63,518 bases of DNA, filler included, from Octopus bimaculoides (GCF_001194135.2; 7 parts of 6 records of this genome joined end to end with filler, not necessarily neighbours in it), one strand, 5' to 3'; shown: positions 2,787 to 23,086, numbered from the whole stretch's first letter. Numbers and translations: made by a program. The notes: a model not told the origin generated them from the sequence alone.

Positions 2787-3464
2787 CGAAACGCCTAGTT
2801 TAGAATAGAGGCAGCTGATGAAGGAAAAGTTCTATAAGTAGCTCGTCTGTTTTCCTATGTGTTCATTCTTTTGTCCGCAAAAAAAAATCGGTTTTTTGTG
2901 CTTTACTTATGTTCCCGTTCCTTTTTTGACGTCCTGTACCCGGATATGCATCTATATATACATGTAGATGTAGGTATGTATACATGCATATGCTCATATA
3001 TCATTTCTATTATTATATATATATATATATATATACATACATGTACATATATATGATGGTTGTCTACTCCTTATGTAGAGTCTGACCACCTATTGTACCT
3101 ACATCTTAGATCCATCATGGCGTCTGATGTGGCTTTTTTGTAGGGTGGGGGGTTACTCAATTACATTAACCCCAGTGCTTAACTGGTACTCATTTTATTG
3201 ACCCTGAAAAGATGAAAATCAAAATCAACCTCTTCAAAATTTGAATTCTGAGTTTCAAGAGGCAGAAGAAATGACACTAAACAAATAATAATGATATTCA
3301 TGATAATGACAGGAAAATGATTTTCATGATGGTGAATTTTTCATTAGTACGAGTTAACAAGGTTTTATTCGAAAGGTGTAGTTCAATTAATCACTCTTAT
3401 TATACATTTTGTATTTTATCACTTCAGATATATATGTTCTTGATATCACAATTATGACACTACC

Positions 3465-4620: not shown

Positions 4621-4830
4621 ATATCGCCAAGACTCTCTATTCAGATAGACATTACACACTGAGTTATTTCTGTTTTGAGGAATATAACCGATCCTGTTCC
4701 AGGAACCGGACTGAAGTTCGTTTGGATAGTAGACAGAGGGAAATTGATCCAAATTTCAAGAGAACACTGTTTCAGCTTCTACAAAAAGTCTGTTTAACAG
4801 CAGATAGCATGAAAAACATTGAATATAAAA
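4621..4830 (+). CDS. Lipocalin gene exon: domain 1 C-terminal half (phase 1 to 1)
   Basis: Acceptor tacttttcag, donor gtatgt. IAKTLYSDRHYTLSYFC...SC...VRLDSRQ...KVCL aligns with the other two C-terminal exons. Confidence 0.75.
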
Positions 4831-7800
4831 GTATGTTTGATTTTTGTCTATTATTGTTATGTTGTTGTTATTGCTGATAGGATGAGAGTTGACCTCGGGT
4901 AAGTCAATCATTCATTATTTCTTTATACAAAAGGACATGTAAGGTGTAACTTAAATAATAATAACGCCATTGGCAAAAAATAATGTTAGAACATTACATC
5001 AAAGTATTTTCATACATTCTTTTATGTTCTGACTTCAAATGCTACCAGAAGTGACTTTGCCTTTCATATACTTAAGGGCTGATAAAATAAATAGCTGTAA
5101 TATGTTATTATCAACTTGATTATATTTCTCCTCTAAAGATTTTGATCTATTATTCAACTAAAATACCAGCATTATTACTCCTGCTGGTAGACATTCCTTC
5201 ACCAGTGTAGTTCTCTTGAGAGTATCTGATTTCACCACTGAAAGCAAACAAAGTCCCTGCAATTTAGACAGTTCCTAATCTCATACAAAGATAATCTGCA
5301 CTTCATCAAACTATTTATTTATAGATATGTTGATTTCACTATTCAAGAGTTAAATCTCTTTACCTGAAACACTGTATATCATAAGTGATGAGATGTGAAC
5401 TATGCTCCCTTCTAGAACAAACCTAGCAATTTCATGACACTATCAACTTCTATTCACTTCCAAAAATTATTGAAATTAAGTATTTTTTAGTTATTGCCTA
5501 TAAGCTTCATACAAACATAAGTTTCTGTTTCTTAAGTGATAATGCTATGCTTTTGGTATAACTGGTAATTGTCTTAGTATTATAATTGGTTGTCGTACTG
5601 ATATATTAAGTGCTGATGGTGTCGGTATAGGTATAATTGCTTGTGTTACAGGCATAGCTAGTGATGCTGTTGGTATAACTGGTGGTGGTGTACAGAGAGT
5701 TGGTACACTAGCTAGTAATATCAGTCACATATTTGCTGATAATTGATGGTATAGTTAGTAATGGTACTTGCATAACTGGTAGTGGTCCTGGTGTAGCAAT
5801 ACTGGTGTAAACACTGGTAATGGTGTTGGTATAGTAACTGGTAATTGTATTGGTATAATAACTGATAGTGGTGTTGGTGTAGCTGTCAGTGGTTTTGGAC
5901 TAATAATTTGTAGGGATTTTGGTAAAATAACTGGTAATTGTATTTTCATAATAGCTGGTAGTATTGTTGGAATAATTACAGGTAATGGGCTAAAGTACAT
6001 ATGTATGTATCCGTGCATACAGACATGTACACACATATAATATATGTAAGTGTATTTTTTTCATTTAAAACTTGTTTCATCCTTTTATTCCAGTCAATTG
6101 CTCTTCAAATTTAAATGAAGTTGTCAACAAAGAACAAGGTAAGTAGAGCATTACATTTTATCTTTAATTCTTTAGCTATGTTTCGATGTTTCATTCTAAA
6201 TATTTCATAATGGTAACTTGGAAGAATGTGGAAATATGTGGAAATATAGAGTTGTAGGGGAAGAAATATGTGGAAGTAAATGGAAGAGAGTAAAAATAAC
6301 ATGGAAGTACCTGAAAGTATGTGAAAGCACTTGAAAGTAAAAGGAAGTGTGAGGAAAAGTGGGTAGCAGTTTTTATGTAATGTTTCATTTTTATCACTTT
6401 TTGAGCCTAACAACAAAACACAAACAAAATCATTGCACGCATCTGACTAGAGAAAGCAGCCAAACTTTTATATAACACACCTTTGTATAAAAAATAAGAA
6501 AAGTATAATCCTAGATACCCATGAAATATGTGATACACATGACTGATTGTGATATTTAAACAAAAAAGACTCTTGGTTTACTTGAAAATAAAATTATTTA
6601 AATTGTATTTTACAAAAGTGCAATTTAAGAACCCTGTCAATGGTGTCTGTCAAATGGAAAATATGCCAATAGCGGACTACAATCATGGAAAAACACAGGT
6701 TAGTTTGTTTATATATCAATAATTTTATCCTTGTAACATCTCATAAAGTATAATAATTATTTAATTTCATAGAAGAAAATACAATTAACCTCGTTCTAAA
6801 ATAATCTTTAGGAATTGTTACACTACAGTAAAGCTGAATAAGAGTCAACTGAGTCAAAATTCTGATCCTTAACTTGTATAAGATTATGACACTCACCACC
6901 TACTTACAACCAGGGTATCTGTATGTGGTAGGTGAACTTGCTAGAAATAGTACCCAGAATTCTTTTCTTTTCTAATAACATCCTACTGTTTTGAAAAATA
7001 AATACATATTGGACAAAATACTCCTAGATATACAAAAAATACTGCATGGTAACATATGGAATGCATTTTTTTTTTTCTACTTGTTGAGTCTGGTGGAACA
7101 GGCTTTGTGAACCTCTTGAAATCAGGGAGATTGATGCCATTGCTTAAACTGATTCAAGTTGACACCTGTAGAAAAGTCTTGAAGAAAGAGATGGTTTTAG
7201 AGGGACAATATTTTGGGGAGGAAAGACCGGGAGTAGTGAGCAGTGCATAGCCTGAAGACCAGACACAACAGTGATGAAGAGAGGATAAGAGATGTGTGAG
7301 TTGGTAGTACTTGAGTGCAGGTTTCACGATACTCACAAGTTTTGATGTGTTGAAGCCATGGAAATAAGAGAAGAGTTTTGAGCATATCTGCAAATGGCTA
7401 TGTGCAAATTAGTCAAGTAACTTTTCTCTAAATGTTGTCTCGGATTTTTCTCTGTACAGAAGCAGTATCTTAGCACAATCAAGGATGACTCACTTAATCA
7501 CAACTCCAAAGTTAAAACTAAATGTACTTTCCTTCAACGGTGTCAAAAAGAAAGAAGCTTATAAATATTACTACAAGTTGTTTAATGCAGAGAAGGCTTT
7601 GAAAGAGAGAGACTACTCCCAGGTAGACTCAACAGAGGGACTAGCAATTAAAACAGACAGTCATATGGTTGAAAGCATTAACTGGATTATAAGGGATAGT
7701 TGTTGAAATGATGAAAATTGCTGACAACATAAGACATGCACTAGTCACTTGCATTTGTCAGTCAGATAAGACAAGGAGATATTACATTCAATGAATGGTA

Positions 7801-7962
7801 TAACAGAGCAGAAGAGATTTAGAAATGTAGAAGAAAACTTTTTTCAAAATCTTACCTGTAGAAACTGGTGATTTTCCTTGAAAATTCTCAAACTGAATAC
7901 CTGCTGTAATAGTTGTTATAATAATGATTGTTGTTGTTGTTGATAATAATAATAATAATGAT

Positions 7963-7994
<32 letters not shown>

Positions 7995-10900
7995 GGAATA
8001 TAAGAGACACCATGACAATATAGCCAGGCTTGTCCATTGGACACTTTGCAACAAGTATGGACTTGACAGAGCAAAACATTGGTATAACCACAAACCTGAA
8101 GGCATCATCGAAAATAGAAATGCAAAGATCCTATGGGATTTTATGATTCAGTGCAACCATGAGATTGAGAATAGGAAGCCAAACATAGTCTTAATTGAGA
8201 AAGAAAACAAACTATGCTAGATCATTGATATAGCATGCCCAGCTGACAACAAGGTATGCGATAAGGAAGAAAGAAAAGTTGAGAGATATGACAGGTTAGC
8301 TTGGGAAGTTAAGCAGTTGTGGTCAATGAAAAAGGTAGCAGTAGTACCAATAATTGTCGGAGCCCTGGGTACAGTGAGCAAAAAATCTCAAGAAGTATGT
8401 GGAACAAATAGGGGCTGCAATAAGGGTGGAGCACTTGCAGAAAACAGCACTGCTTGAAACTGCACGAATACTCCAGAAGGTGCTCGAACAATAAGATGCG
8501 TTACCTTAGTTCACTGGTAGTGAACAGTTAACACTGTAGTACATCTCCAGCGTTAGAAGCTGTGCAAAGGCAATAATAATAATAATAATAATTCCAAATT
8601 TTGACACAAGACTAGCAAATTTTGGGGAGGAGCTAAGTCAGTTATATCGATCCCCAGTGCTCATCTGGTACTTATTTTACCAACCCTGAAAGAATGAAAG
8701 GCAAAGTCGACCTCAGCAGAATTTAAACTTAGAACATAAAGAAGAAGGGGCTAAACATAAAGGGGACAAACAAGGACAGACAAAAGGATTAAGTTGATTA
8801 CATCGACCCCAGTGCGTAACTGGTACTTCATTTATCGACCCCGAAAGGATGAAAGGCAAAGGCGACCTCGGCGGAATTTGAACTCAGAACGCAATGGCAG
8901 ACAAAATACCGCTAACGATTCTGCCAGCTCGTCGCCTTAGTTATAATACTAATAATAATCTGGCTGATGAATGGAAACCTGAAACAAGAGGTAAAGTGCT
9001 GAATATAGCTGCTCAGGAACAGACCATCTGGACAAATCTAACAAAGGCAAAGAGCAACAAAACTCAGTCAGACACCAAATACAAAAACTGCAGAAAAAGA
9101 GCCAAAAGCAGCTCTTGAGTGGATTCTGTAAGTTAGGGCAAAAAAGCAAAAGTGTAGGTAAATGAAGTGCATTGGGATGTTAGCTGAGTGAGTGGTTTCA
9201 AAATATCAGGAAAGTGGTATGAACAAAAACTGTGACAAAGAATGAGGATTACAGGATCTTATAGGGCCTCTCCATAAAGTCTGACCATACCATGAAAGCA
9301 AGAATATCAGATATAATTATAGAGGACAAAATAGATAAACAGTGTAAAATCAGAGATTTTGCAATTCCCTATGATAATAGAGTGGGTACCAAAGAAATTG
9401 AAAAAATTGAGAAATATCAGGATCTATATCCAAAGAACTGAAAAGACTGTAGAAGTCTAAGAAACAATTATTCCTATGGTAATTGGTGCACTTGGCACAA
9501 CACCCAAAGTGCTACCTAAAAAGACTGAAAGAGATTGAAATTAAAACACATTTTGTCAACCTACAGAAAAGTACCATCCTATATTCTGCAAATATCCTAA
9601 TAAAGATTCTAGAGATTTGAGGAGACTTGTTGTTACCAAACCTCAAGATAACATTGGTGCATGTAAAGCTTGATAATAATAATAATCTTAACTATCATTT
9701 TTCTCTTCTAAATCTGTCATCTAGTTGGATGGTATTTGGTATGTCATTGCTGCTTTGAACAGTATTCCCGGATCTGTTGTGAACATCACCACACTACCTG
9801 ACACTTTGATCATTGACCGGTGCACACCAAAGTAACAACCTTTTTATCATTTATCTGTTGTCATTATATATTCATGCTAACTGCTTTGTTTTCTCATCTA
9901 TCCCATACGTTGCTATGGTAACTTGTAAATTGTCCAGATGTCATCATAACAGTCTGTGTACATCCAGGCAACCACAAAAATTATCCTTGTGGACACATTT
10001 AAAAGATTGCACTTCTTATGTACTACACAGCTTACACAACTGCACAAAAGAGACTACTGTGAATGCAGTCATTAAAACCACCTGCACTAATGCATTATGT
10101 ATGCAATATAAATTTGCACTACACCAAAATATATGCATGCATTGTGCACAATATTGGATTACACGTCACATTTGCACACTACATCATTTTGACACCAACA
10201 TCTCTTTACATGCACATTAATACCAATGCACATTAACACCACAGCACTGCTAATAATACTGCACACTAACACCATTGTAGAATAAACAGCACTACAATAC
10301 TAATACTATTGCACACTAATACTATTACAACTACTACACTACAATATAAACACCCTTGCATCAATAATACTATGGTTGCTACAAAGGTATTGATACCACT
10401 TCAGACCGACACTTTTAACTAGAAACACTTCTGTATTAATAACACCATCAATTATACCACTGCATACTATCTAAATTGCACCACTAATAACACTACAGTT
10501 CTAACATTTCTAACATCTTTAACTACACTGCAACTCTAACACTGCTACACACAAACAATATTGGAATGTTCAACATCGCAATATAAGACTTTAAGACCTA
10601 CAACAATAACATAATGTCACTGCATCATATATACATTATAAGCTTACAGTTGCACTAGAGTAAAAAATGTATTCTTCTTCAATACCACTATATCATAGAT
10701 ACAACCCACAAATTTCACCCTTGCTCTCTTCTTCTGTCTCTTTTTACTGTCCATCTTATTTGATGCACTATAATCTAGCAACATAACTACTAAAATATAA
10801 ACACTTACTCATTCACAATGCATGATCAGCAAATGAACNNNNNNNNNNNNNNNNNNNNNNNNNNNNNNNNNNNNNNNNNNNNNNNNNNNNNNNNNNNNNA

Positions 10901-13900
10901 CTACTAAAATATAAACACTTACTCATTCACAATGCATGATCAGCAAATGAACACCATTGTAGAATAAAATAAAGTGAAGAATTTCCAAATCAAAATAATT
11001 CAGAAGTTCACTATCTGTTTTCAATTTACCTAGCAGTAAGTGTTATGAATAGGAGAAAAGTAGTCTCTATCTGGTCCAAGCTGAAATTGAACTTGCTGCT
11101 GTAAGTTAATAAATCTTTATTGATGTTGTTTGAAGCAATAAGTTGTTAATATACTGTAGTACTTAGTGCATAATTAAGTGCACTTGAGAGTTAAGTGTCT
11201 TAGCCATAGATGCAATGAGATACTGAGGACAAGTTATAAACTATACATCTTTCTCTATGACTGTCCACTGCACTGATATGTATAACTTATACAATGAAGA
11301 ACATAGAAGGATAAATAGACAAATACAAATGTACAATAATACTTCACAATAACTAGTCAACAATGTAAATTAGGATCCACTGAAAGACAGTCTGTAATCC
11401 AACCATTTCATTCATGAGCTCAGTACTTAAATGTATTTCATTCTACATCAGGAACAATACTTGTCAATGGAAATCGAGAAGCAGCTATACCCAAATCTGT
11501 CCAGGAAAGGCAAAATTCATGGAAACATACCTGAACTTTCCAGGAACAAATTTCAGTACAATATGTAAGTCCTTACCTGAATTATTGTGAAATATATGAA
11601 GCTTCATAAAAAAATAAGTGGTATGTGAGTTTCTGAAATTTCTAAGTAATGTATTGATTAACTGAATGTTCTGACACTCTACATCTACATAAATGCCTAC
11701 TTGTTCAGTCAACATTTACAGTGTGTCTGTCAATCTCCTAAACATCTACACACTATATCTCTCTACTCAAATCCTACTCACTATGTCCTTCTATATGGTC
11801 AATATCTACACATTGTCTCTATCTATACAGTCAACATCAACATATTGTGTCAATTTATGCAGTCATCATCTATTGTGTCAATATTTGCACATGGTAGCTC
11901 TCTATCAAATCAACATCTACACATTGTATTAATGTATCCACTCAACATCTACATGCCATATCTATCCACTCAATATCTGCATCATGAAACTATTCAATGT
12001 GTATATACATGTGTGTCTATGTGCATACATACACATGCAGCCATGCCAGTGTGGAAAGTGGATGTAAAAAAATGATGATGATGATAATGATGGTGAGAAG
12101 GAGGAGATTCTAGTGCTGATGGGGGTAGTGAGAGTGGTAATGGTAGTGGAGGAGGGGGGAAGAAGAGTATGTCAAGTAACAGAACAAGCAAGTTACAAAT
12201 ATCAGTTAGGAACATGCTATATAACTGATTATTCTTTTATACTCTTTTACTCGTTTCAGCCATGCGTTTGCAGTCATTCTGGAGCACCACCATTATTATG
12301 TAGAGTTAAATCTAATATATTTTTCAATTACATTAAATCGAAATCGAAATTGAACTAAATTCAATGACTGGCCCCCATGCCAACGTCTCCTTCATTGGAC
12401 ACTAAACTCGGCTTGCGAAGACCTGTTGGGGCAAGCGAAAGTGAAATCGTGATGGCACCTGTACCAGTGGAGCACTAAGAGCACCATTCGAGCATGATCA
12501 TTGCCAGAGCAGCTGTCCGGCTTCTGTACCGGTGGCACATAAATAGCATCATTTGAGCGTGATCATTACCAGCATTGCCTTCCTGGCACTTGTGCTGGTG
12601 GCACGTGAAAAAACATTCAAGTGAGATCATTGCCAGTGCTGCTGGACTGGCTCCTGTGCAGGTGGCACGTAAAATACACCATTTTGTGCGTGGCCATTGC
12701 CAGTACTGCCTGACTGGCCTTCGTGCCGGTGGCATGTAAAAGCACCCACTACACTCTCAGAGTGGTTGGCATTAGGAAGGGCATCCAGCTGTAGAAACTC
12801 TGCCAAATCAGATTGGAGCCTGGTGTAGCCATCTGGTTCACCAGTCCTCAGTCAAATCGTCTAACCCATGCTAGCATGGAAAGTGGACGTTAAGTGATGA
12901 TGATGATTAACCTTCAAACCAAGCATTTTCAAACACATAGTAAGAATAAATAAAGTTAACAAAAAAGAAACCCGCATGCACACATGCGTGCGCACATGTG
13001 TGTGTGTGTGAGCTCATCAACAACATCATCATCATCATCAATGTCTTCATTGTCATTTTATGTCCACTTTCCATAATGTCATGGATTGAATGGTTTGTCA
13101 CAGTCCAAATCAATTCTTATTTAGAGTCACTGCCCTCTTATATTTCTCATTCATGTTTTAATTAGCATGGTCTTTATGGCCAAATGCACTTTCTAATAAT
13201 AACCACTTCACAGAGTGTACAAGGTGAAAACAATATGCCACCAACTGGAGAGGTTGTCTTGTCCTTAATAGAACAGAACTAATGAGTCCTCTCACGCTTA
13301 CATTATCTCCACTCATTCATCAACCACTTTACAGAGTGTACTGAGTGCATTTCCTCATGGCACCAGCAATATTGAGATTACCTTCTACTCTGCAAGACAA
13401 AACAGATCCTTACTACTGTGTGTTGTCTTCACTGGATCGAGGTAACAGGGATGAATAGCAGAAGGAAAGTGAGAGAGGGGCTGATTGTAGAAGGTGAACC
13501 AAGGTGGAAAAAAGATTGAAACAAGACAATGGTTGGGGAGACAGTTAGTTGGGCTGACATCATATAAGTAGATGGAAATGGAAGAGAGTACTAACCCTCT
13601 AGTGATGAAAGAAAGGAAGTTATGGCAAGGAGTCTCTAATACCAGGATATAAAGAAAGAGATGGTAGTTGCAGAAAACAGAAGAGAGCAAATGATGAATA
13701 GTTGAAGAAATGGGTGTATGAGTGGGACTAACAGTACAGAATGGTGATGTTAGCTAGCAAGAGAGAGAATGTGACTGATGAATAATAAACAGGTGATCCG
13801 AGCTCTGCAGGCAGAGCTGGTAGATAATTAGGACTGCTTTTATGAGGCCCTTCTGTACTCTCCATCAACAATGATTGATAACAATTTCATTATTATGGTT

Positions 13901-13984
13901 GGTGATTTTAATGGAGTATTAGTCAACACAGTAAAGTTTCTGCAGTATTCATGGAGGTTATGGCTACATGATGAGAAATGACAT

Positions 13985-14023
<39 letters not shown>

Positions 14024-17000
14024 AGAGAGAGAGAATTCACATATAAACATTGAAAAGTATATTTACAGTAATGAAGATCTCAATAAATGAACCATTGTTA
14101 AACTCCAATATGGGAAACTCTTGTAGAACAAACTTGCATGTATTAGAAGTGGCTTTAATGATTATTTAAAATAATAAGAGGGAAAGCATAAATTTCCATA
14201 TACTTCATAATTTGTGTTAAACAGATGTTTAATTGACATACCTTAATTGCATAAATCATATTGTTTGATGACAAAGAAACAGCTGTGGGCCACAAATTAT
14301 GAACTTTGTGAAATTTATGCTTTTCTGTTTTTTGTTTTGTGTGTGTGTGTGTGTTCATGCACACATGTGTGCATGTGTGACTACGTACATGTTTGTGTAT
14401 TTAGCCTTCGCATTTTATTTAACCTGATAAGTACACACTGAGCTGCCACCTCAAGTTCTTCAGCTCTTGCTTGAACTGGTATATCTTATTTGCTCCATCA
14501 TTTATGCTGTAGGAAAATTTTAATGTTGTCTTCTTTTTCAGCCTGAACTCAGTTTCTAGACTAGAGATAGTGGTGGTAATCATCTGGAGGTATCAATCAG
14601 AATCACCCATAACTATTGCCTTCAAGATGGAATCAACCCATTCCTTTCTTTGTTAGTTAAGGGCCACATCATTCAGTGATGTTCTACTACTCTGCATAAG
14701 TTTGGGCTTGTCTATCCAGTAACTGCAGATGAATCCAGGCTTGGCTTCCCCTGAATCTCACTACCATCTACACACATTTCATCTTGTCCTATTAGATTTT
14801 CAGGTCATACCGGTTTTTACAGACTTTGTTACAAATACATTCCATTTTCATTACTATAAATCTGTTACCAAACAGACTCACATGAATATGAGGCAAATTG
14901 AGCTTAATAAATCACATGACTTTTGTGCCACAATTAACACACCATCCTAAATAAGCATACCATTATTACTAAAGAGATCTGTTACCAGAAAATTATTACA
15001 CATAATTCTTTTCATTCATAGATGAACATCACATGGCCTATATTGATGAAGACACTCATTTCATATACTCATGCCCAGAAGAAAGTACAGGAAAGTGTGA
15101 TGCAAATGGTGTTTCACTCATGATATACTCCAGACGAAAACAAACAACACACGATATCCTGGAGAAACTAAAAAACTTTCAGCCATTTCTATGTTTGAAT
15201 ATTTCTCACCTGAATACAGTAGAATTTCCATCATTGAGTAAGTAAAGTTGGTACATTTTTCAGAAATGTCTCTTCAATCTACTCTCATCCCTAACTGTCT
15301 AACTTTATTTCTCACTATCTTACTCTATCTCTCTTTCCTTCTGTCTTTTTCTTTGTTCTTATCCTTATCTGTCTCTATTGCTCTTTATCTTTCATCTTCC
15401 AGTCTTCGTCCCTCTATACCAATCAATTTCACTATCTACATCTGTCTTCCTTTTTCTCTATCTGTCTATCTTTCTATCTAATTCCCCCTCTTTGCGTCTC
15501 TCACACTCATTCTTCTTTAGCCAAAAATTTTCATAATTTACAATTTGAATGTCATACCACTACAACAATATCCGCCATCAGTAATACACCTCTATGCCAA
15601 CATCTATATCCTCCACTATAACTACATCCACCATTACAATTTTATCTCCAGCTAATCTAAAAACTGTTATAATTCATTACATTTATGTACGTGGTCTGAT
15701 CAATAAATATCCAAACTGTTGCCATAGTAACAAAGCTAAAGCACACAAAATGAAGCCACTTGGCACAGATTGACCTTGAACTCTGCTGTGCATGCAACTA
15801 AGTCTTAATGTTCTATCTCACTTCCACTGTTTACGGCAGTGCTTGGAAAGAACATGTGTAGTGTGTGATCATCACATTGACCATGACAGAAAAAGTTGAG
15901 CAGAGAATCTGCATCAAATTTTGCTAAAAGCTTGGTGATACCTGCTCAAAGGCCTACACAAAGTTGCAGAAAGTGTATGGAGAGCAGTGTATAAGCTGCA
16001 CACAGGTGTATGAGAGGTTCAGACGTTTCCAAGATGGCTGAAAAAATGTCGATAGGGATGAACGTTCTGAGAGACCTGCAACCAGCAGAACTGAGGAAAA
16101 CATCGCAGATGTGCGTGCAGCTGTGAGGAAAAATCATTGAATTGCCATCCATGAGTTATCAGAGTATGTGCAGATTAGTTACGGTTCAGTTCAGTCCATT
16201 ATCACTGAAGATTTGGGTATGTGACATGTGTCTGCTAAGATTGTGCCAAAACTGCTTTCAGCTGATCAAAAAGACACTCAGGTTTCAGTTGTACAAGATC
16301 TCCTTGATTGTGTTGAGAATGACGTAAACTTTTTGAAAACGGTCATAACGGGTGATGAATCATGGGTCTATTTGTTATGACTCCAAAACAAAGGTTCAGT
16401 CTTCACAGTGGAAGACCTCAATTTCTCAGAGATTGAAGAAAGCACGAATGAGTTGAAGCAATTTGAAGACACTGGTGACCATTTTCTTCGACCACAAGGG
16501 GATTGGTCATCAAAAGTATGCTCCACCTGGTCAGACAGTAAACAAGGAGTACCACCATGACATTTTGTGGGATGCTATTCATCAGAAAAGGCCACAATTG
16601 CATGTGTCCGGTGAGTGACAATTGCACCATGACAACGCGCCTGCCTGTTAAGCACATCTTATGCAGCAATTTTTGGCACAGCATTCCCCAGGTCCAACAG
16701 CCACCATATTCCCCCGATCTTGCCCTTGCAACTTTTTCCTCTTTCCAAAAATCTAATTCTGCTTGAAAGGAAGAAGGTTTCAGGACGTCGGGGAAATCAA
16801 AGTGAATGCAGTGAGGCAGCTGCTGACTATCTCAGAAAACGAGTTCCAGGAATGTTTCCATTAAGTGTGTGGCTTCTGGAGGGGACTAGTTTGAAGGAGA
16901 TTAAATGCCAAATTGGTATTTGCTGTAGTTTTGTTTTTATAGTACCAGTCCAGATACTAGTTGATCAGACCTTGTATCTGTTTTGCACAAGTCTTCATGT

Positions 17001-20000
17001 GAAAATGTGTGTTTAAACAGATATTGTTATAATTGAGGATGTTTTGTATTTTTTTTTACAACTATACACACACACTATTTGATCTTCACTATAATTTATT
17101 TTTATATATCCTTAATTCTAGATTTCACAGAACCTACAAAATTGACGAACAACACACATACTACATGTTCTGTGGAAAATATTCCTGGTATTGAAAACTA
17201 CAACCAGTCAAAGGTTCGTTGTTGTTGATATTCTTTAGCTTTAACTCAGCTCTAGCCAAGTAGGAAAGTGGTCCAAGACATTACAGTCATGATCAGCAAA
17301 TTTTATTATTAATTAATTTTACATAGGTGGAATTACTGGAGGAGGTCTTCATGGTCATTTTAAGACCAAAACCAGCTTCCTAACTTCATTCCTTGCCAAC
17401 ATTCTGAATGTTGCAAAACTTTGACTGTGTTTTTCTCGGTTTTTAAGTTGCAGTGCTTACAACAGTCTGTTACTAAATGCCTCATATATTTTAATGCTTT
17501 AATAATTCTGCCAGCTCACTACCAATACCACTTGTTGATACTCCGTCGTTTACAATGTCGAGGGTTCCAGTTGATCTGATCAACAGAACAGCCTGTTCGT
17601 GAAATTAACGTGCAAGTGGCTGAGCACTCCACAGACACGTGTACCCTTAACATAGTTCTCGGGGATATTCAGCGTGACACAGTGTGACAAGGCTGACCCT
17701 TTAAATTACAGGCACCACTACTACTATGATTATCAGAAATACTACAACTTCTGTGGTCATCAATACTAATATAGGAAAGTGGGTTATACATCATTAGATG
17801 TATACCTGACTTTCCTATATAATATTATGAATATAACGGAACGCTGAACTCCAGACTATCAACATAACTATTATTTATTTAAGGTGGTTAATATATACAT
17901 CTTTAGCTCTTGTTTGTTGTTACAGCTTCTGTGTGTGTGAGCATTGTTGTTGGGACGTTGGTATGTAGATGTAAGCGAGCTGTCGAGCGTAAGTCCGAAA
18001 GATGGAGAGAGACAGCTAAACACGTCCATGCTCAATCGCTGGCCAGCAAGAAAGAGACAGATCAAAGTGGGAAAGCTTGGTATGTTGAATTCCACGCATG
18101 CGTGAGACTACGCATGCGCACGGCGTTACTACAGGGCTCCCTTGCCAGTGCGGAAACGCACGATAATATGAGATCTGTTGGAACGCCTGGGGCAGGATGG
18201 CCACCGAAACCACCCACAAGATGTGGTACAGACACACACAAAGAAAAATCAAAGAAATGAATGTACACTTGTGAGATACATGCATGCAATGTACAAATGA
18301 AATGACAATGACAAAACAACCGTGATGACAACTGTCCAGGAAACTGGAATCACGCGATGTAAAAGTCTGATTTTTTGTTCTTTCTGAAAGGAAAGAAAAT
18401 ATATGAGTGCACAAGTGTGTGTGTGAGAAAAAAACACAGAACATAGTAAAAGTGTCTGTAGTATAGACTGCGAAAAGTCCTAAAACACCGAGATAGAGAA
18501 AACCAGTTTGTATTAAAATTCCACAAGGAGATAGAATGTCTGTACTCAGGAAGTCGTGGTCNNNNNNNNNNNNNNNNNNNNNNNNNNNNNNNNNNNNNNN
18601 NNNNNNNNNNNNNNNNNNNNNNNNNNNNNNNNNNNNNNNNNNNNNNNNNNNNNNNNNNNNNNNNNNNNNNNNNNNNNNNNNNNNNNNNNNNNNNNNNNNN
18701 NNNNNNNNNNNNNNNNNNNNNNNNNNNNNNNNNNNNNNNNNNNNNNNNNNNNNNNNNNNNNNNNNNNNNNNNNNNNNNNNNNNNNNNNNNNNNNNNNNNN
18801 NNNNNNNNNNNNNNNNNNNNNNNNNNNNNNNNNNNNNNNNNNNNNNNNNNNNNNNNNNNNNNNNNNNNNNNNNNNNNNNNNNNNNNNNNNNNNNNNNNNN
18901 NNNNNNNNNNNNNNNNNNNNNNNNNNNNNNNNNNNNNNNNNNNNNNNNNNNNNNNNNNNNNNNNNNNNNNNNNNNNNNNNNNNNNNNNNNNNNNNNNNNN
19001 NNNNNNNNNNNNNNNNNNNNNNNNNNNNNNNNNNNNNNNNNNNNNNNNNNNNNNNNNNNNNNNNNNNNNNNNNNNNNNNNNNNNNNNNNNNNNNNNNNNN
19101 NNNNNNNNNNNNNNNAGCAGATAGAAAGTCAGTACACGTGAGAGTTTTATACCAAGTTCTTGAGTACACAATTGGAAAGTCGTGTTGACTATGGTTGGAG
19201 ATCTTGGTGGTCATCGTTGCTTGGTAGTTCAGTCTCCATGGCCGTATTTGTTCTTTAGTCGGGGTTCACCAGTTATAGGTTGGTAGTCCAGAATCCATGC
19301 TGCGTTTGTTTCTTCGTCGGGGTCACCACTTTATAGGAAAGTGGGTTATATGAACTTTTCAAGTTGGCTGCGTGTTTGAATCACGTCGGGGGTCACCACT
19401 TTATAGGAAAGTGGGTTATACATCATTAGATGTATACCTGACTTTCTTATATAATATTAAGATTTAACGGAACGCTGAACTCCAGACTATCAACTTAAAC
19501 AACATTTATTCAGGTGGTAAATATATACATCTTTAGCTCTTGTTTGTTGTTAGAGCTTCTGTGTGTGTGTGAGCATTGTTGTTGGGACGTTGGTATGTAG
19601 ATGTAAGCGAGCTGTCGAGCGTAAGTCCGAAAGATGGAGAGAGACAGCTAAACACGTCCATGCTCAATCGCTGGCCAGCAAGAAAGAGACAGATCAAAGC
19701 GGGAAAGCTTGGTATGTTGAATTCCACGCATGCGTGAGACTACGCATGTGCACGGCGTTACTACACTAATATTCCCACCATAAATACTACAATCATCATC
19801 AATACCACAACTTGTTACCACTATTACTAATACCAGTTACTATTATTACTAACATTAATACCACTAGTATTATCATTAATACTTCTACTATTACCGATAC
19901 TATTACTAAATTGGGATCTTTTTTAAAACTGGGGCCACATTTTTCATTAACGAAACACTTTGAAACTTGGAACACTGGTAGAATGTGTCATATAAAACAT

Positions 20001-22519
20001 CTTTTTCTCTTAGTCTTCTTTAAAAAAAAGAAATCCCTAAGTTATTCCATGTTAAAGTTGTCGTATTTCTGTAATTTCAACCAATCACTGACGTCCATTC
20101 ATCCGATATACATTAAGTGCCGACTACATAAACAAACGATTCTGAAACAATTCTATCGGTGATAGGGTTAGGGTTAGGGTAAAACAGCAAATTTAAAAAG
20201 AAAAAAGCAAATAAAACGAAGCTATGGCTTAATCAGCCAAAGGAGTAAATATAAACAACTGAATACTTGTCAGTGATTGGTTGAAATTATCGAAATAAGA
20301 CAATTTTTTACATGAAATAAATTCGAATACAAAAATATTTTTCTGTTCTATAACACAAAATAGATAAGTATACGAAGTTTGAAAGTCTTTCGGTACCAAA
20401 AACACTACGTAAAACATTAATGAAAAATGTGGCCCCCGTTTTAAAAAAGATCCCTAAATTAACTAATATAATCATCAGTACTAGTACAACTGCTACTATT
20501 ACAACCAGCACTAATTCTATTGCTACTATTATCATGAATGTGGAGGCGCAATGGCCCAGTAGTTAGGGCAGCGGACTTGCAGTCACAGGATCGCGGTTTT
20601 GAATCCCAGACCGGGCGTTGTGAGTGTTTATTGAGCGAAAACACCTAAAGCTCCACGAGGCTCTGGCAGGGGATGGTGGCGAACCCTGCTGTACTCTTTC
20701 ACCACAACTTTCTCTCACTCTTACTTCTTGTTTCTGTTGTACCTGTAATTCAAAGGGTCAGCCTTGTCACACTGTGTCACGCTGAATATCCCCGAGAACT
20801 ACGTTAAGGGTACACGTGTGTGTGGAGTGCTCAGCCACTTGCACGATAATTTCATGAGCAGGCTGTTCCGTTGATTGGATCAACTGGAAACCTCGATGCC
20901 GTAAGCGACGGAGTGCCATCAACAACAACAACATTATCATGAATACCTTTGTTACTTGCACCAATACTACTATAATGATTACCTCTTTTATAGCTAAAAT
21001 TTCAGGAGGGTTATCTGAGTAAATCCCACCTGCTTTATATCTTACAAAAGCAGAGACTCTTGTGCCTATAAAGGAAATAATTATACAGGAAATTTAATTT
21101 CCTAAGTTGCTAATCTTTCATTTCTAAATTGATACATGGCATTCTTTATTTTTCTGAATAATATAGCTAATAGCCAACATTTGCTTCAATCATTTCAGCT
21201 CCTTGGAACATGGTATGAAGTAGCACATTCTGATATCCCTGACCAAATAGGAAAGAGGGGTCCAAACCATACACATAGAGTTCAATTCTATGAGGACACA
21301 GATGGACATCTAAAACTTGGATATCAACATGATAGGTAAGTATTACATTACAATAGTAAGACAAGTGCCGTTACTATGGGACAGAGATATGGACATTGGT
21401 TAGAAATATATTAATAGTATGGCTGCTATATTAGACAACACAATATTACTATTGCATTATATTACACCACACAATACTACATAAGCTTTCCTAATCCCTA
21501 TTATATTGTGCAAGCCATTCTAATACATTACACCAGACCAGCCATCCTATGACATTGTATCACACCAGCTCTTTATTAAATTATAAAACACCAGCTAAAC
21601 TATTATACCATACCATCTATCTTATTACGGCACACTATATATTGTATTACATCACATCACACTAACTGTTCTATTACATCAAAACAGGTGTCACATTACA
21701 CTGCGCCACACCAGTTATATGTATTGTTACATTACATTCTACCAGCTGTCCTTTCACATCATACCATGTTCAATTACATCACACTAATAATCATATTACA
21801 TAACACCAAACCAACTGTTGTATTACATCTATCACATCACACCAGTTGCACTATTACATTATACCACACAGCTGTCCGATTATACCACACTGCATTTTAA
21901 ACATCTGGCTGTTTCTCAGTCTGACATTAAATATCTAACCAATAGTACATGACTCCAAATAAATACTTTGAACTGGGCAATACAAATACAAGAAAGCAAG
22001 TTGTTTTAAAGTGTAGTGCAATCTACATCTCTCTTTCTTTACCTATCTCTGATTCAGTTGTTTCTGTCTCTCTCTCACTCAAACCTTTCATCACCTCCAA
22101 TGCCCCCTCCTCTCTCAATGCACTCAGTCCACTCTGCAGGGTGGTTGGTGTCAGGAAGGGCATCCAGCCATAAAAGTCATGCCAAAACAGACACTGAAGT
22201 CTGGTGCAGTCTTCTGCCTAGCCAGCTCCTGTCAAACTGTCCAACCCATGCCAGATTGGAAAGTAGATGTTAAATGATGATGATGATGTTCAATCTTGTA
22301 TCATAACAGTATTCCTCTTCTCTAAATAATCTATGCTATTCTTGTTTCTTTCAGCAACAAGACAGACACTTCTGGTGCATTTGTTGGTGACATACAACCT
22401 CAATGTGTTTATAGTCTCAGTGGACATTTTACATCGAAGTACACATTTTCTGCACGTAAGAGATCAGATATTGCACATAATATTATAAATATATATCCTG
22501 TGTTACATTTGATGTGAAC

Positions 22520-22571
<52 letters not shown>

Positions 22572-22701
22572 NNNNNNNNNNNNNNNNNNNNNNNNNNNNN
22601 NNNNNNNNNNNNNNNNNNNNNNNNNNNNNNNNNNNNNNNNNNNNNNNNNNNNNNNNNNNNNNNNNNNNNNNNNNNNNNNNNNNNNNNNNNNNNNNNNNNN
22701 N

Positions 22702-22792
<91 letters not shown>

Positions 22793-23086
22793 TTGTATGT
22801 GTGTGTATATAAATATATTTCCTTTAGCGAGGATCCTTTCTCTCTGAATATATGTTTACTCTTTATTGCAGTTGTGAAGATCATCTACACTGATTATGAT
22901 AATCTCACAATAATTTTCGTTTGCACTTTCACCAATTACAATGGTGAATGTTATATGCCTATGGTCCACATAATGAGTAGAAAGCTTGAACTTACAACAC
23001 ACATGCTCGGTGTGGCTGAATCTGTCTTCAATAAAGTTTGTATTCATCCAGATAATATCCAGATAGTGCAGGATGTTTGTAAGTAA
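4621..23086 (+). CDS. Multi-domain (three or more tandem domains) lipocalin-family gene; 5' part not found in window; span of nine exons
   Basis: Exons 4621-4830, 6619-6698, 9725-9819 (or 9831), 11452-11564, 15022-15237, 17122-17213, 21199-21335, 22355-22455 and 22872-23078/23086 all have AG/GT boundaries and splice in frame. They carry lipocalin motifs GxWY (twice), TDY-like (three times) and SR (three times). Confidence 0.8.
5560..6000. repeat. Degenerate low-complexity satellite. Similar tracts at about 6200-6360, 10000-10800, 11690-12000, 21420-21900, 27040-27330
   Basis: Recurrent GGT(A/G)(T/A)(A/T)ACT-like short units with strong strand asymmetry. Confidence 0.7.
6619..6698 (+). CDS. 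Lipocalin gene exon: linker/N-terminus of domain 2 (phase 1 to 0)
   Basis: QFKNPVNGVCQMENMPIADYNHGKTQ, donor CAG|gttagt. The acceptor is a weak AAG. Homologous to 17122-17213. Confidence 0.6.
7090..7400 (-). mobile_element. CR1/L2-group LINE 3' fragment; ends approximate
   Basis: Minus translation TAHYSRSFLPKILSL*NHL...GVNLNQFK matches the SFxPRTxxLWNxLP...NLxxFK terminus. Confidence 0.6.
7990..8580 (+). mobile_element. R4/Dong-type non-LTR retrotransposon 3' end (restriction-like endonuclease)
   Basis: RHHDNIARLVHWTLC...KILWDFMIQ...RKPNIVLIEK...IIDIACPAD...VVPIIVGALG, followed by a (TAA)n tail. Confidence 0.85.
8590..8935 (-). mobile_element. Two adjacent SINE copies with Deu/Nin-like core. 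Other copies at about 3140-3270, 36820-36910, 43950-44330, 47760-47950, 49540-49790, 53150-53340, 55827-56042
   Basis: Recurrent motif GCCTTTCATCCTTTCGGGGTCGATAAA..AGTACCAG..CTGGGGTCGAT with B-box-like GAGTTCAAATTC. Confidence 0.75.
8950..9690 (+). mobile_element. Second, older R4/Dong-type 3' fragment
   Basis: KPET...IAAQEQTIWTN..KAK..KTQSD and PMVIGALGT segments, with frameshifts and a (TAA)n tail. Confidence 0.75.
9725..9819 (+). CDS. Lipocalin gene exon: domain 2 GxW exon (phase 0 to 2; alternative end 9831)
   Basis: Acceptor ctgtcatctag; LDGIWYVIAALNSIPG... Confidence 0.75.
11452..11564 (+). CDS. Lipocalin gene exon: domain 2 middle (phase 2 to 1)
   Basis: Acceptor ctacatcag, donor gtaagt; NNTCQWKSRSSYTQICPGKAKFMETYLNFPGTNFSTI. 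Confidence 0.75.
12335..12906 (+). mobile_element. SINE-like repeat with internal subrepeats and (GAT)n tail. Shorter copies at about 22120-22290, 25280-25520, 32610-32760
   Basis: Shared tail GGTTGGC.TTAGGAAGGGCATCCAGC...GGA.GTTAA.TGATGATG at several positions. Confidence 0.7.
15022..15237 (+). CDS. Lipocalin gene exon: domain 2 C-terminal half (phase 1 to 1)
   Basis: Acceptor ttcattcatag, donor gtaagt; MAYIDEDTHFIYSC...GKC...LMIYSRR...FLCL. Confidence 0.8.
15690..16974 (+). mobile_element. Full-length mariner transposon, inactivated
   Basis: 1285 bp; TIRs CGTGGTCTGATCAATAAATATCC / AGATACTAGTTGATCAGACCTTG flanked by TA. Transposase remnant MTEKVEQRICIKFC*, VITGDESWVY, HHDN and YSPDLA, with stops and frameshifts. 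Confidence 0.92.
17122..17213 (+). CDS. Lipocalin gene exon: linker/N-terminus of domain 3 (phase 1 to 0)
   Basis: Acceptor ttaattctag, donor AAG|gttcgt; FTEPTKLTNNTHTTCSVENIPGIENYNQSK resembles the C..P...N(F/Y)D..K segment that precedes GxW in lipocalins. Confidence 0.75.
17770..19765 (-). mobile_element. Small (probably non-autonomous) Gypsy-type LTR element with tRNA-Trp PBS
   Basis: Two 364-bp direct repeats (17770-18133, 19402-19765), TGTAG...CTATA on the minus strand; 4-bp TSD CTAA at 17766-69 and 19766-69; PBS TGGTGACCCCCGACGTGA 3 nt from the 5' LTR; weak PPT GGCAAGGGAG; 554-N gap inside. Confidence 0.88.
19913..20454. mobile_element. Non-autonomous TIR DNA element (542 bp), superfamily unassigned
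   Basis: 38-bp TIRs GGGATCTTTTTTAAAAC(T/G)GGGGCCACATTTTTCATTAA; TAAATT on both flanks; internal inverted repeat. Confidence 0.85.
20542..20930 (+). mobile_element. tRNA-derived SINE, full length. Related copies at about 17525-17715 (-), 30780-30910 (-), 35820-36130 (+)
   Basis: A/B-box head GGCGCAATGGCCCAGTAGTTAGG...GGTTTTGAATCCC; shared 3' body CAGCCTTGTCACACTGTGTCACGCTGAAT...; (AAC)n tail. Confidence 0.8.
21199..21335 (+). CDS. Lipocalin gene exon: domain 3 GxW exon (phase 0 to 2)
   Basis: Acceptor catttcag, donor AG|gtaagt; LLGTWYEVAHSD is the SCR1 motif. Confidence 0.85.
22355..22455 (+). CDS. Lipocalin gene exon: domain 3 middle (phase 2 to 1)
   Basis: Acceptor cttgtttctttcag, donor gtaaga; NKTDTSGAFVGDIQPQCVYSLSGHFTSKYTFSA. 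Confidence 0.75.
22872..23086 (+). CDS. Lipocalin gene exon: domain 3 C-terminal half (stop at 23084-86, or donor after 23078)
   Basis: Acceptor ctttattgcag; VKIIYTDYDNLTIIFVC...GEC...HIMSRK...KVCI contains SCR2 (TDY) and SCR3 (SR). Confidence 0.85.

Follow-up and report, generated by a model that had tools for sequence, protein, structure and literature searches.

LOC106871838 of Octopus bimaculoides encodes a predicted secreted protein with four tandem lipocalin domains

In the DNA of Octopus bimaculoides analysed here (63,518 nucleotides including filler, the whole of which is called the window), eleven exons on the + strand between positions 4621 and 25898 splice in one frame into the C-terminal part of a multi-domain lipocalin, and judged by sequence agreement this gene is almost certainly LOC106871838. 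In fact, the translation of the 11 spliced exons equals residues 276-735 of the annotated 735-amino-acid (aa) product (P0077), with 460/460 residues matching and then the stop, and the piece of the window that carries these exons agrees with L001 29256-56973 of GCA_001194135.2 (chromosome CM046602.1) at 100% identity. The whole gene has 18 coding exons over ~45 kb of CM046602.1, in the interval 121.888-121.934 Mb, and the window contains the 3' 60% of it. Upstream of the window lie the signal peptide, a first domain and half of a second one. The product carries an N-terminal signal peptide (MSCGIVLLFVTVVSSLVIAAP…) followed by four tandem lipocalin domains, namely D0 (residues ~21-174), D1 (~172-347), D2 (~366-532) and D3 (~545-722), and its C-terminal tail is hydrophilic with no membrane-anchor signal. 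For LOC106871838 as a whole, a protein of four lipocalin domains is the best explanation of the data and a very probable one. By sequence comparison, its domain type appears closest to vertebrate retinol-binding protein 4 (RBP4).

An earlier note, made from the sequence alone, had described a hidden gene with the C-half of one lipocalin domain and two complete ones between 4621 and 23086. The proposed cephalopod multi-domain lipocalin is supported and corresponds to LOC106871838; the total is four domains, the rest being upstream of the window, where the 5' extension suggested as a check yields seven further coding exons and the signal peptide. The word hidden does not hold, as RefSeq and UniProt entries exist for the 735-aa protein, the latter under the name 'Lipocalin/cytosolic fatty-acid binding domain-containing protein', though Pfam flags only one of its four domains. 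The gene is thus known already as a database entry, unstudied, and the octopus gene list gains nothing from it. Searching the literature by gene identifiers and by lipocalin together with octopus, we found no publication on LOC106871838; two octopus papers mention a lipocalin (one in the optic gland, the other an 'FABP/lipocalin' synteny marker beside venom genes), and neither can be linked to this gene.

The exon model contains three paralogous C-half exons (4621-4830, 15022-15237 and 22872-23078), each of which, in a stop-free + frame, carries YSD, YID or YTDY, a C…x7-8…C pair, SR and a later (V/L)C. On inspection of the DNA, each of these pieces begins after an acceptor AG and ends at a GT donor, mostly GTAAGT or GTATGT. 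The D1 C-half exon (4621-4830; strands F-H plus helix; phase 1 to 1; residues 276-345 of P0077) bears YSD, a C…x7…C hairpin, SR and KVC, ends at the donor AAA A|GTATGT, and has 74% nucleotide identity with the orthologous exon of Argonauta. It is followed by a symmetric linker exon of 45 nt at 6094-6138 (phase 1-1; AG|…|GTAAGT boundaries), which encodes INCSSNLNEVVNKEQ and whose Cys takes the RBP4 Cys174 position relative to D1. D2 then starts with an N-terminal segment exon at 6619-6698 (…NPVNGVCQMENMPIADYNHGKTQ; phase 1 to 0; donor CAG|GTTAGT; residues 360-387), and continues with exon A at 9725-9831 (phase 0 to 2), which holds the GxW motif as LDGIWYVIA (9725-9751) and runs from strand A onward, exon B at 11452-11564 (NNTCQW…ICPGKAKFMETY…; phase 2 to 1; residues 423-460), which shows nucleotide conservation in Argonauta, and exon C at 15022-15237 (YID, hairpin Cys pair, SR, FLC; phase 1 to 1; donor TTG A|GTAAGT). 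An acceptor is required at exon A because an in-frame TAG stop stands immediately 5' of it. Exon B is the single strong phase-compatible candidate in a scan of splice sites and phases; this middle exon was not found by tblastn of domain against domain, because the domains are too diverged (22-25% identity in this comparison). Likewise, D3 is built from an N-terminal segment exon at 17122-17213 (NFTEPTKLTNNTHTTCSVENIPGIENYNQSK; phase 1 to 0), which fits the 'C…ENFD…K' segment of ApoD/RBP type, exon A at 21199-21335 (phase 0 to 2; donor AG|GTAAGT) with LLGTWYEVA at 21199-21225, exon B at 22355-22455 (SNKTDTSGAFVGDIQPQC…; phase 2 to 1), and exon C at 22872-23078 (YTDY, hairpin Cys pair, SR, KVC…IVQDV; phase-1 donor T|GTAAGT), which is the part matching Pfam Lipocalin. 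The last coding exon, 25825-25898, encodes the hydrophilic tail SASEVNHSCNTVKSTDWKKERQSR, whose Cys takes a Cys174-like position relative to D3, and closes with the stop TAA at 25896-25898.

With these exons, the motifs on which the earlier note relied (LDGIWYVIA, LLGTWYEVA, YSD/YID/YTDY, SR and the matching cysteines) are all present on the + strand, and the in-frame splicing it proposed is borne out with canonical sites and the exact match to P0077. Its figures need revision: the range 4621-23086 has 10 coding exons instead of nine, the 45-nt exon at 6094-6138 having probably been overlooked, and these 10 exons encode 436 aa instead of about 480. Moreover, the gene end that had been placed at …QDVCK* (stop at 23084-23086) is intron read-through, because all three orthologues run on as QDV-S…, fitting the phase-1 donor T|GTAAGT at 23078/23079; the annotated model splices from 23078 to 25825-25898.

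The intron phases provide further information on the gene structure. A direct join of the D1 C exon to D2 exon A was rejected, as pairing a phase-1 donor with a phase-0 acceptor produces a frameshift and a stop; therefore intervening N-terminal segment exons were sought, and scanning for phase-0 donors yielded two small exons, homologous to each other, which give the Cys-bearing segments …GVCQMENMPIADYNHGKTQ (end 6698) and …TTCSVENIPGIENYNQSK (end 17213). Within each domain the phases run 0, 2 and 1 up to a fused C-terminal exon, which is followed by phase 1. As far as the exon model goes, this agrees with the canonical lipocalin gene structure, whose intron phases are 0,2,1,1,1 (PMC3184775). 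In addition, each domain cassette has phase-1 introns at both sides and a length divisible by three (D2 516 nt and D3 537 nt, calculated from the coordinates), and therefore the cassettes can be duplicated or joined in frame.

Three assembly gaps fall inside introns of the gene, at 10839-10899 (between D2 exons A and B), 18562-19115 (between the D3 N-terminal exon and D3 exon A) and 22572-22701 (between D3 exons B and C, within a (CT)n microsatellite), and the chromosome-level assembly has the same N runs, so it offers no sequence to close them. The coding continuity is independent of the gap lengths, since the flanking exons splice in frame to the annotated protein. In the Argonauta locus, which has no gaps here, the D2A and D2B exons are consecutive protein matches and the D3B and D3C nucleotide matches come further on with the order kept, and the alignment of the three orthologous proteins has no insertions at the gap-spanning junctions. 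A direct repeat of 364 bp (95% identity; 17770-18133 and 19402-19765) stands on either side of the gap 18562-19115; two copies of a transposon or a duplication made in the assembly may account for it, and it is intronic in both cases.

Is the encoded protein a lipocalin in all of its four domains? Pfam itself detects D3 only (Lipocalin, 29.9 bits vs a cut-off of 23), gives a marginal match of D0 to Triabin, a related lipocalin-type family (22.2 bits vs a cut-off of 21), and has no match for D1 and D2. The G-x-W motif of structurally conserved region (SCR) 1 reads SGTWH in D0, DGIWY in D2 and LGTWY in D3, with D1 as the exception, where LGNSF is found instead (P0077 196-201, upstream of the window at L001 24830-24949) in all three octopods alike; the Trp was lost in place, because the exon begins at the homologous position. 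SCR2 and SCR3 are represented in all four domains by STDY, YSD, YID and YTDY, respectively, and then SR, and the C-half alignment shows no variation in these columns. At the profile level, a domain hidden Markov model (HMM) was iterated over the retrieved proteins to convergence, which gave 268 domain matches in 88 proteins. When built without cephalopod sequences, it finds four full-length domains in P0077 at 50-84 bits, and 45-88 bits across the octopod proteins. Similarly, hhalign against the non-cephalopod family gives a probability of 99.1% for the D2 orthologue profile and 98.8% for that of D1, over 153 columns.

It is also conceivable in principle that motifs of this kind arise by chance similarity in AT-rich, repeat-rich DNA where there is no gene at all, and the window does contain two extra 'LLGRWY' matches (at 17947 and 19579) which are decoys, not exons, as they lie inside the 364-bp repeated intronic element. 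For the gene, such an origin is virtually untenable and is refuted by the exact match of 460 residues to an annotated protein, by the HMM score of 50-84 bits for every domain, and by conservation: orthologues exist in two other species, O. sinensis and Argonauta hians, and the nucleotide conservation between Octopus and Argonauta is limited to the exons, which are collinear, and to dispersed repeats.

The link to known structures comes from the family alignment. With an alignment of 32 domain sequences (A3) and a threshold of E<=0.01, 174 sequences in PDB were matched, and the best 60 of the 174 are all lipocalins or engineered lipocalins. Plasma retinol-binding protein leads (1iiu, full length; 1.7e-27, 99.5 bits), followed by ApoD (3e-22, 82.3 bits), sandercyanin (1.6e-20, 76.8 bits), insecticyanin (4.2e-17, 65.6 bits), bilin-binding protein (2.4e-16, 63.2 bits), Blc (2.1e-14, 56.8 bits), LCN2 (2.4e-14, 56.7 bits) and crustacyanin (1.7e-12, 50.7 bits). 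An AlphaFold model of D3 made with A3 reaches a predicted local distance difference test (pLDDT) score of 76 and a predicted template modelling (pTM) score of 0.75; it shows strands and then a helix, with low confidence in the D/E strand region, and in a Foldseek comparison of this model with PDB the best 50 are all lipocalins, with probability 1.0 and template modelling (TM) scores of 0.65-0.79. Of the check by HMMER and AlphaFold that the earlier note had recommended, the Pfam match and the model of D3 agree with a lipocalin, D1 and D2 gave no Pfam match and the full-length model failed, as described below.

The conservation among octopods tells us about the age of the arrangement. The domains are 15-20% identical to one another, whereas each single domain has 86-88% identity between the Octopus species and 55-57% to Argonauta; therefore the duplications are old and each domain has been retained. 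For the whole proteins, the identity is 88% with O. sinensis and 55% with Argonauta hians, and counting domains in the orthologues, as had been proposed, gives four in both species, in the same order and with the linkers kept in sequence and length. The gene is 39 kb long in Argonauta and 45 kb in O. bimaculoides, but exceeds 100 kb in O. sinensis. Downstream of the O. sinensis orthologue (P0076), the neighbouring gene is of Peptidase_C13 (legumain) type and lies on the other strand.

It has to be considered, too, whether three or four tandem single-domain lipocalin genes were merged into one by the gene predictors, each of them having a read-through stop and an unrecognised upstream signal exon. 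The GTAAGTAA donors do contain stops, so that D2C could end in …LSK* and D3C in …CK*, and the inter-domain introns are 1.3-1.9 kb long, one of them with a transposon remnant. All junction phases in the window, however, are compatible with one single reading frame: the D1C and D2C donors are phase-1 GTATGT/GTAAGT, and the exons following them accept in phase 1. Between the domains in the window there is no exon with an ATG and a hydrophobic start that has a phase-1 donor, and D2 exon A is not a protein start, because an in-frame stop precedes it. Read-through of the D1C exon would lead to an odd, hydrophobic and Cys-rich tail (SMFDFCLLLLCCCYC*), which is implausible. The linker exons and their lengths are kept in three species, the nearest relatives carry 4 to 33 domains, and the octopus domains pair with those of the relatives in the same order. 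A related four-domain protein of 848 aa is encoded on a 2.6-kb Logan contig (a sequencing-run assembly) with little room beyond the coding sequence; because this contig is too short for introns of any size, the four-domain architecture exists in mRNA elsewhere. Merged single-domain genes are accordingly quite improbable, and on the gene models in three species, the intron phases and the lack of start exons between the domains, one multi-domain transcript from LOC106871838 is highly likely. As for individual starts, the ATG at 21136 (MAFFIFLNNIANS…) was tried as a separate start of D3 and rejected: the hydrophobic core is too short, D2 uses the homologous acceptor, and all orthologues read …NQSK|LLGTWY.

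Several points weigh against a single protein of four lipocalin barrels. The octopod proteins in the collection are three genome-derived models only, and the Argonauta model is named after the O. sinensis gene, so it may reflect homology transfer and not be fully independent. If the D2C donor were read through, translation would stop just two residues on (LSK*), which on the sequence by itself leaves some room for separate genes. D1, being without the GxW Trp, may not form a normal binding barrel. Moreover, the full-length AlphaFold model made with three orthologues is unusable (pLDDT 36), and the orthologue profiles of D1 only and D2 only match nothing in PDB at E<=1. For these last two reasons the lipocalin status of D0-D2 is transitive, passing through the family to the solved structures, though at the profile level it appears strong.

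Beyond the octopods, the algorithms retrieve a wide set of relatives. The query was a profile of the three C-half exon translations, searched exhaustively against 1.84 billion representative proteins; it gave 75 matches, the top 19 of which are all multi-domain, and the second, an Argonauta hians protein, led to the two Octopus proteins, one being P0077. The spliced D3 fragment in a word-index search had no match, and the orthologues surfaced only with the exhaustive C-half profile search. Multi-lipocalin relatives occur in molluscs, annelids, echinoderms and hemichordates, and their source names are all 'uncharacterized' or 'hypothetical'. The largest is Owenia fusiformis CAH1786129.1 (P0001; source label 'unnamed protein product'), 5687 aa long with 33 consecutive lipocalin domains by the domain HMM. 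Others are found in Batillaria (2221 aa), Nucella (2332 aa, 10 domains), Haliotis (1332 and 3267 aa, the 3267-aa protein of Haliotis asinina having 15 domains), Mytilus (912 aa), Gigantopelta (754 and 921 aa) and Saccoglossus (LOC100368303, 1041 aa). In Strongylocentrotus purpuratus, LOC584238 (P0004, P0079-P0083; 1276-1309 aa) joins six lipocalin domains of RBP4-like type to a thyroglobulin type-1 domain at the C-terminus, and we found no description of this combination.

The order of the domains seems to be conserved as well. Octopus D0, D1 and D2 have their best matches in Nucella domains 8, 9 and 10 (of 10), D0, D1 and D3 in Haliotis asinina domains 11, 13 and 15 (of 15), and D0, D1 and D2 in domains 1, 2 and 3 of the four-domain 848-aa transcript-like protein. 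This suggests positional orthology between octopus and gastropod domains, which we infer from scores that are modest (27-66 bits). Relative to the databases, what is new is not the gene but the four barrels of which Pfam flags one, the RBP4-type character, the wide marine multi-lipocalin family with up to 33 domains and the seemingly conserved octopus-gastropod domain order; the first three of these appear undescribed in the literature searched.

As to the function, the protein of LOC106871838 would be secreted and glycosylated, and would present four different beta-barrel pockets on one chain, with which it would carry or store small hydrophobic ligands outside the cell, for example retinoids, carotenoids, bilins, sterols or fatty acids. 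A role as small-ligand carrier is somewhat probable, given the lipocalin fold, a signal peptide, domains of RBP4-like type and the long maintenance of four diverged barrels. Because the domains have diverged from one another yet each is conserved among octopods, four old and individually maintained binding specificities are suggested, and from the fold and the strong divergence between the domains one protein may bind several different hydrophobic ligands. Another possibility is that the protein is one multi-domain chain but not mainly a ligand carrier, serving as a scaffold for protein-protein interaction, as matrix, yolk or egg-coat material, or in protease or toxin binding, with some barrels degenerate. 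The GxW Trp of D1 is indeed gone, as are two of the three disulfides of D0, the lepidopteran polycalins are known chiefly as surface binders of bacterial Cry toxins, and the sea-urchin relative bears a thyroglobulin type-1 domain. Nevertheless, every domain retains, with long-term conservation, the core motifs of lipocalins (a TDY-like one, SR and the hairpin), RBP4, a classic carrier, is the solved structure that matches best along the entire domain, and the Bombyx polycalin is itself described, in titles of cited papers, as a chlorophyllide-binding protein. We regard such a scaffold as unlikely and prefer the ligand carrier. In cephalopods, which rely heavily on retinal-based vision and pigment-based display, a secreted carrier with four pockets would be a reasonable candidate.

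Besides the lipocalin exons, the window shows a number of other features. At 15780-16900, within the intron that separates D2 exon C from the N-terminal exon of D3, there is a decayed transposase of mariner/Tc1 type, broken across the three + frames, and the open reading frame 16457-16615 within this range matches Pfam Transposase_1 (PF01359) at 2.4e-6. A dispersed element of ~170 bp (22128-22288, 12739-12907 and 25351-25520; 75-78% identity between copies, 48% GC) sits in introns and 3' of the stop codon, and the Argonauta locus has several copies of it in both orientations. It resembles a short interspersed nuclear element common to Octopoda. The open frames at 7897-8454 and 9265-9500 (also 8634-8900 and 3160-3251) resemble tails of invertebrate retroelements (…IIDIACPADNKV…VVPIIVGALGT…) and have no Pfam match; beside them lies a repeat of ~100 bp, of which the window has three copies and the Argonauta locus has some too. 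Microsatellites of (CT)n and (TA)n surround the gap 22572-22701 (22520-22790 and 21400-21900), and the intron after D3 exon A is largely a long degenerate low-complexity tract rich in A, C and T. Downstream of the lipocalin gene, at the end of the sequence piece and adjoining a 4-kb assembly gap, an open frame of 152 codons (27234-27689) is 55% GC locally, rich in Arg, Val and Ser, and without a Pfam match. The poly(A) hexamers in the window are uninformative in such AT-rich DNA.

The architecture of the octopus protein recalls the polycalins, a term coined for a signal peptide and many lipocalin domains on a single polypeptide (PMC10145054). The same polycalin paper names a silkworm protein 'pentadecacalin', which implies 15 domains, as compared with 33 in the Owenia protein. 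The lepidopteran polycalins (the Bombyx mori chlorophyllide-binding protein P252, and those of Helicoverpa and Plutella) have a multi-lipocalin layout like that in octopus, and the polycalin-like protein of Aricia agestis (1591 aa, 9 domains) is matched by the octopus C-half profile at 1e-19. However, the Aricia domains are almost identical to one another, being recent repeats with a 'YHCNYN…SHRN' type of sequence, and lack the second Cys of the hairpin, whereas the octopus domains are diverged and have the RBP4-type cysteine pattern. Insect polycalins are anchored to the midgut membrane by glycosylphosphatidylinositol. The C-terminus of the octopus protein is hydrophilic, in contrast to the membrane anchor expected of lepidopteran polycalins in the narrow sense. 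The protein is therefore polycalin-like by architecture only and lies outside the narrow lepidopteran family, so the earlier polycalin-like call stands for the layout, and close kinship to the midgut proteins is not supported, given RBP4-like domains with the Cys hairpin; the tandem arrays of the insect polycalins and of the octopus family are likely of independent origin. In the literature searched, we found no account of cephalopod or other marine multi-lipocalins, the 'polycalin' matches listed being concerned with Lepidoptera or their crop-protection control, and a chordate lipocalin review does not treat multi-lipocalin proteins. With the marine multi-lipocalin proteins the octopus protein has the domain family, the Cys pattern and the linkers in common; the octopods have only four domains, while some marine relatives have more, or extra modules such as the sea-urchin thyroglobulin type-1 domain.

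Among proteins of solved structure, RBP4 is the best match of the octopus domain family over its full length (1.7e-27), and the family HMM without cephalopod sequences scores 100.5 bits against chicken RBP. In an alignment of the domains to the family HMM and RBP, D1 and D3 have cysteines at RBP4 positions 4, 70, 120, 129, 160 and 174, D2 at 4, 70, 120, 129 and 160, and D0 at 120 and 129 only, the hairpin; the RBP4 disulfides are 4-160, 70-174 and 120-129, and the octopus cysteines correspond to them by aligned position. Octopus D1 and D3 and RBP4 also both have the 'YSC…DGxC…SR' hairpin. On the other side, RBP4 is a single domain of ~21 kDa in contrast to the four domains of the octopus protein, single octopus domains match RBP4 weakly (E ~1), and for D3 as a single sequence the nearest lipocalin is crustacyanin (E 0.14), ranked behind a non-lipocalin repeat protein. 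RBP4 binds retinol, transthyretin and STRA6; the octopus likeness to it is one of sequence. The origin of RBP4 has been called 'unclear' (PMC3184775). Tentatively, and with a low though appreciable chance of being right, the octopus protein could be a short four-domain member of an ancient bilaterian family of secreted multi-lipocalins, its domain being the closest invertebrate relative of RBP4, with six cysteines in common; RBP4 would then derive from one such domain, and the family would comprise the missing extracellular retinoid/carotenoid carriers of invertebrates. This kinship, if true, bears on the origin of the vertebrate retinol carrier and on retinoid/carotenoid transport in invertebrate body fluids. 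Finally, ApoD, insecticyanin, bilin-binding protein and crustacyanin have the kernel lipocalin motifs and the fold as in the octopus domains, but they are single-domain proteins, and against the family profile they lie 17 to 50 bits below RBP4.

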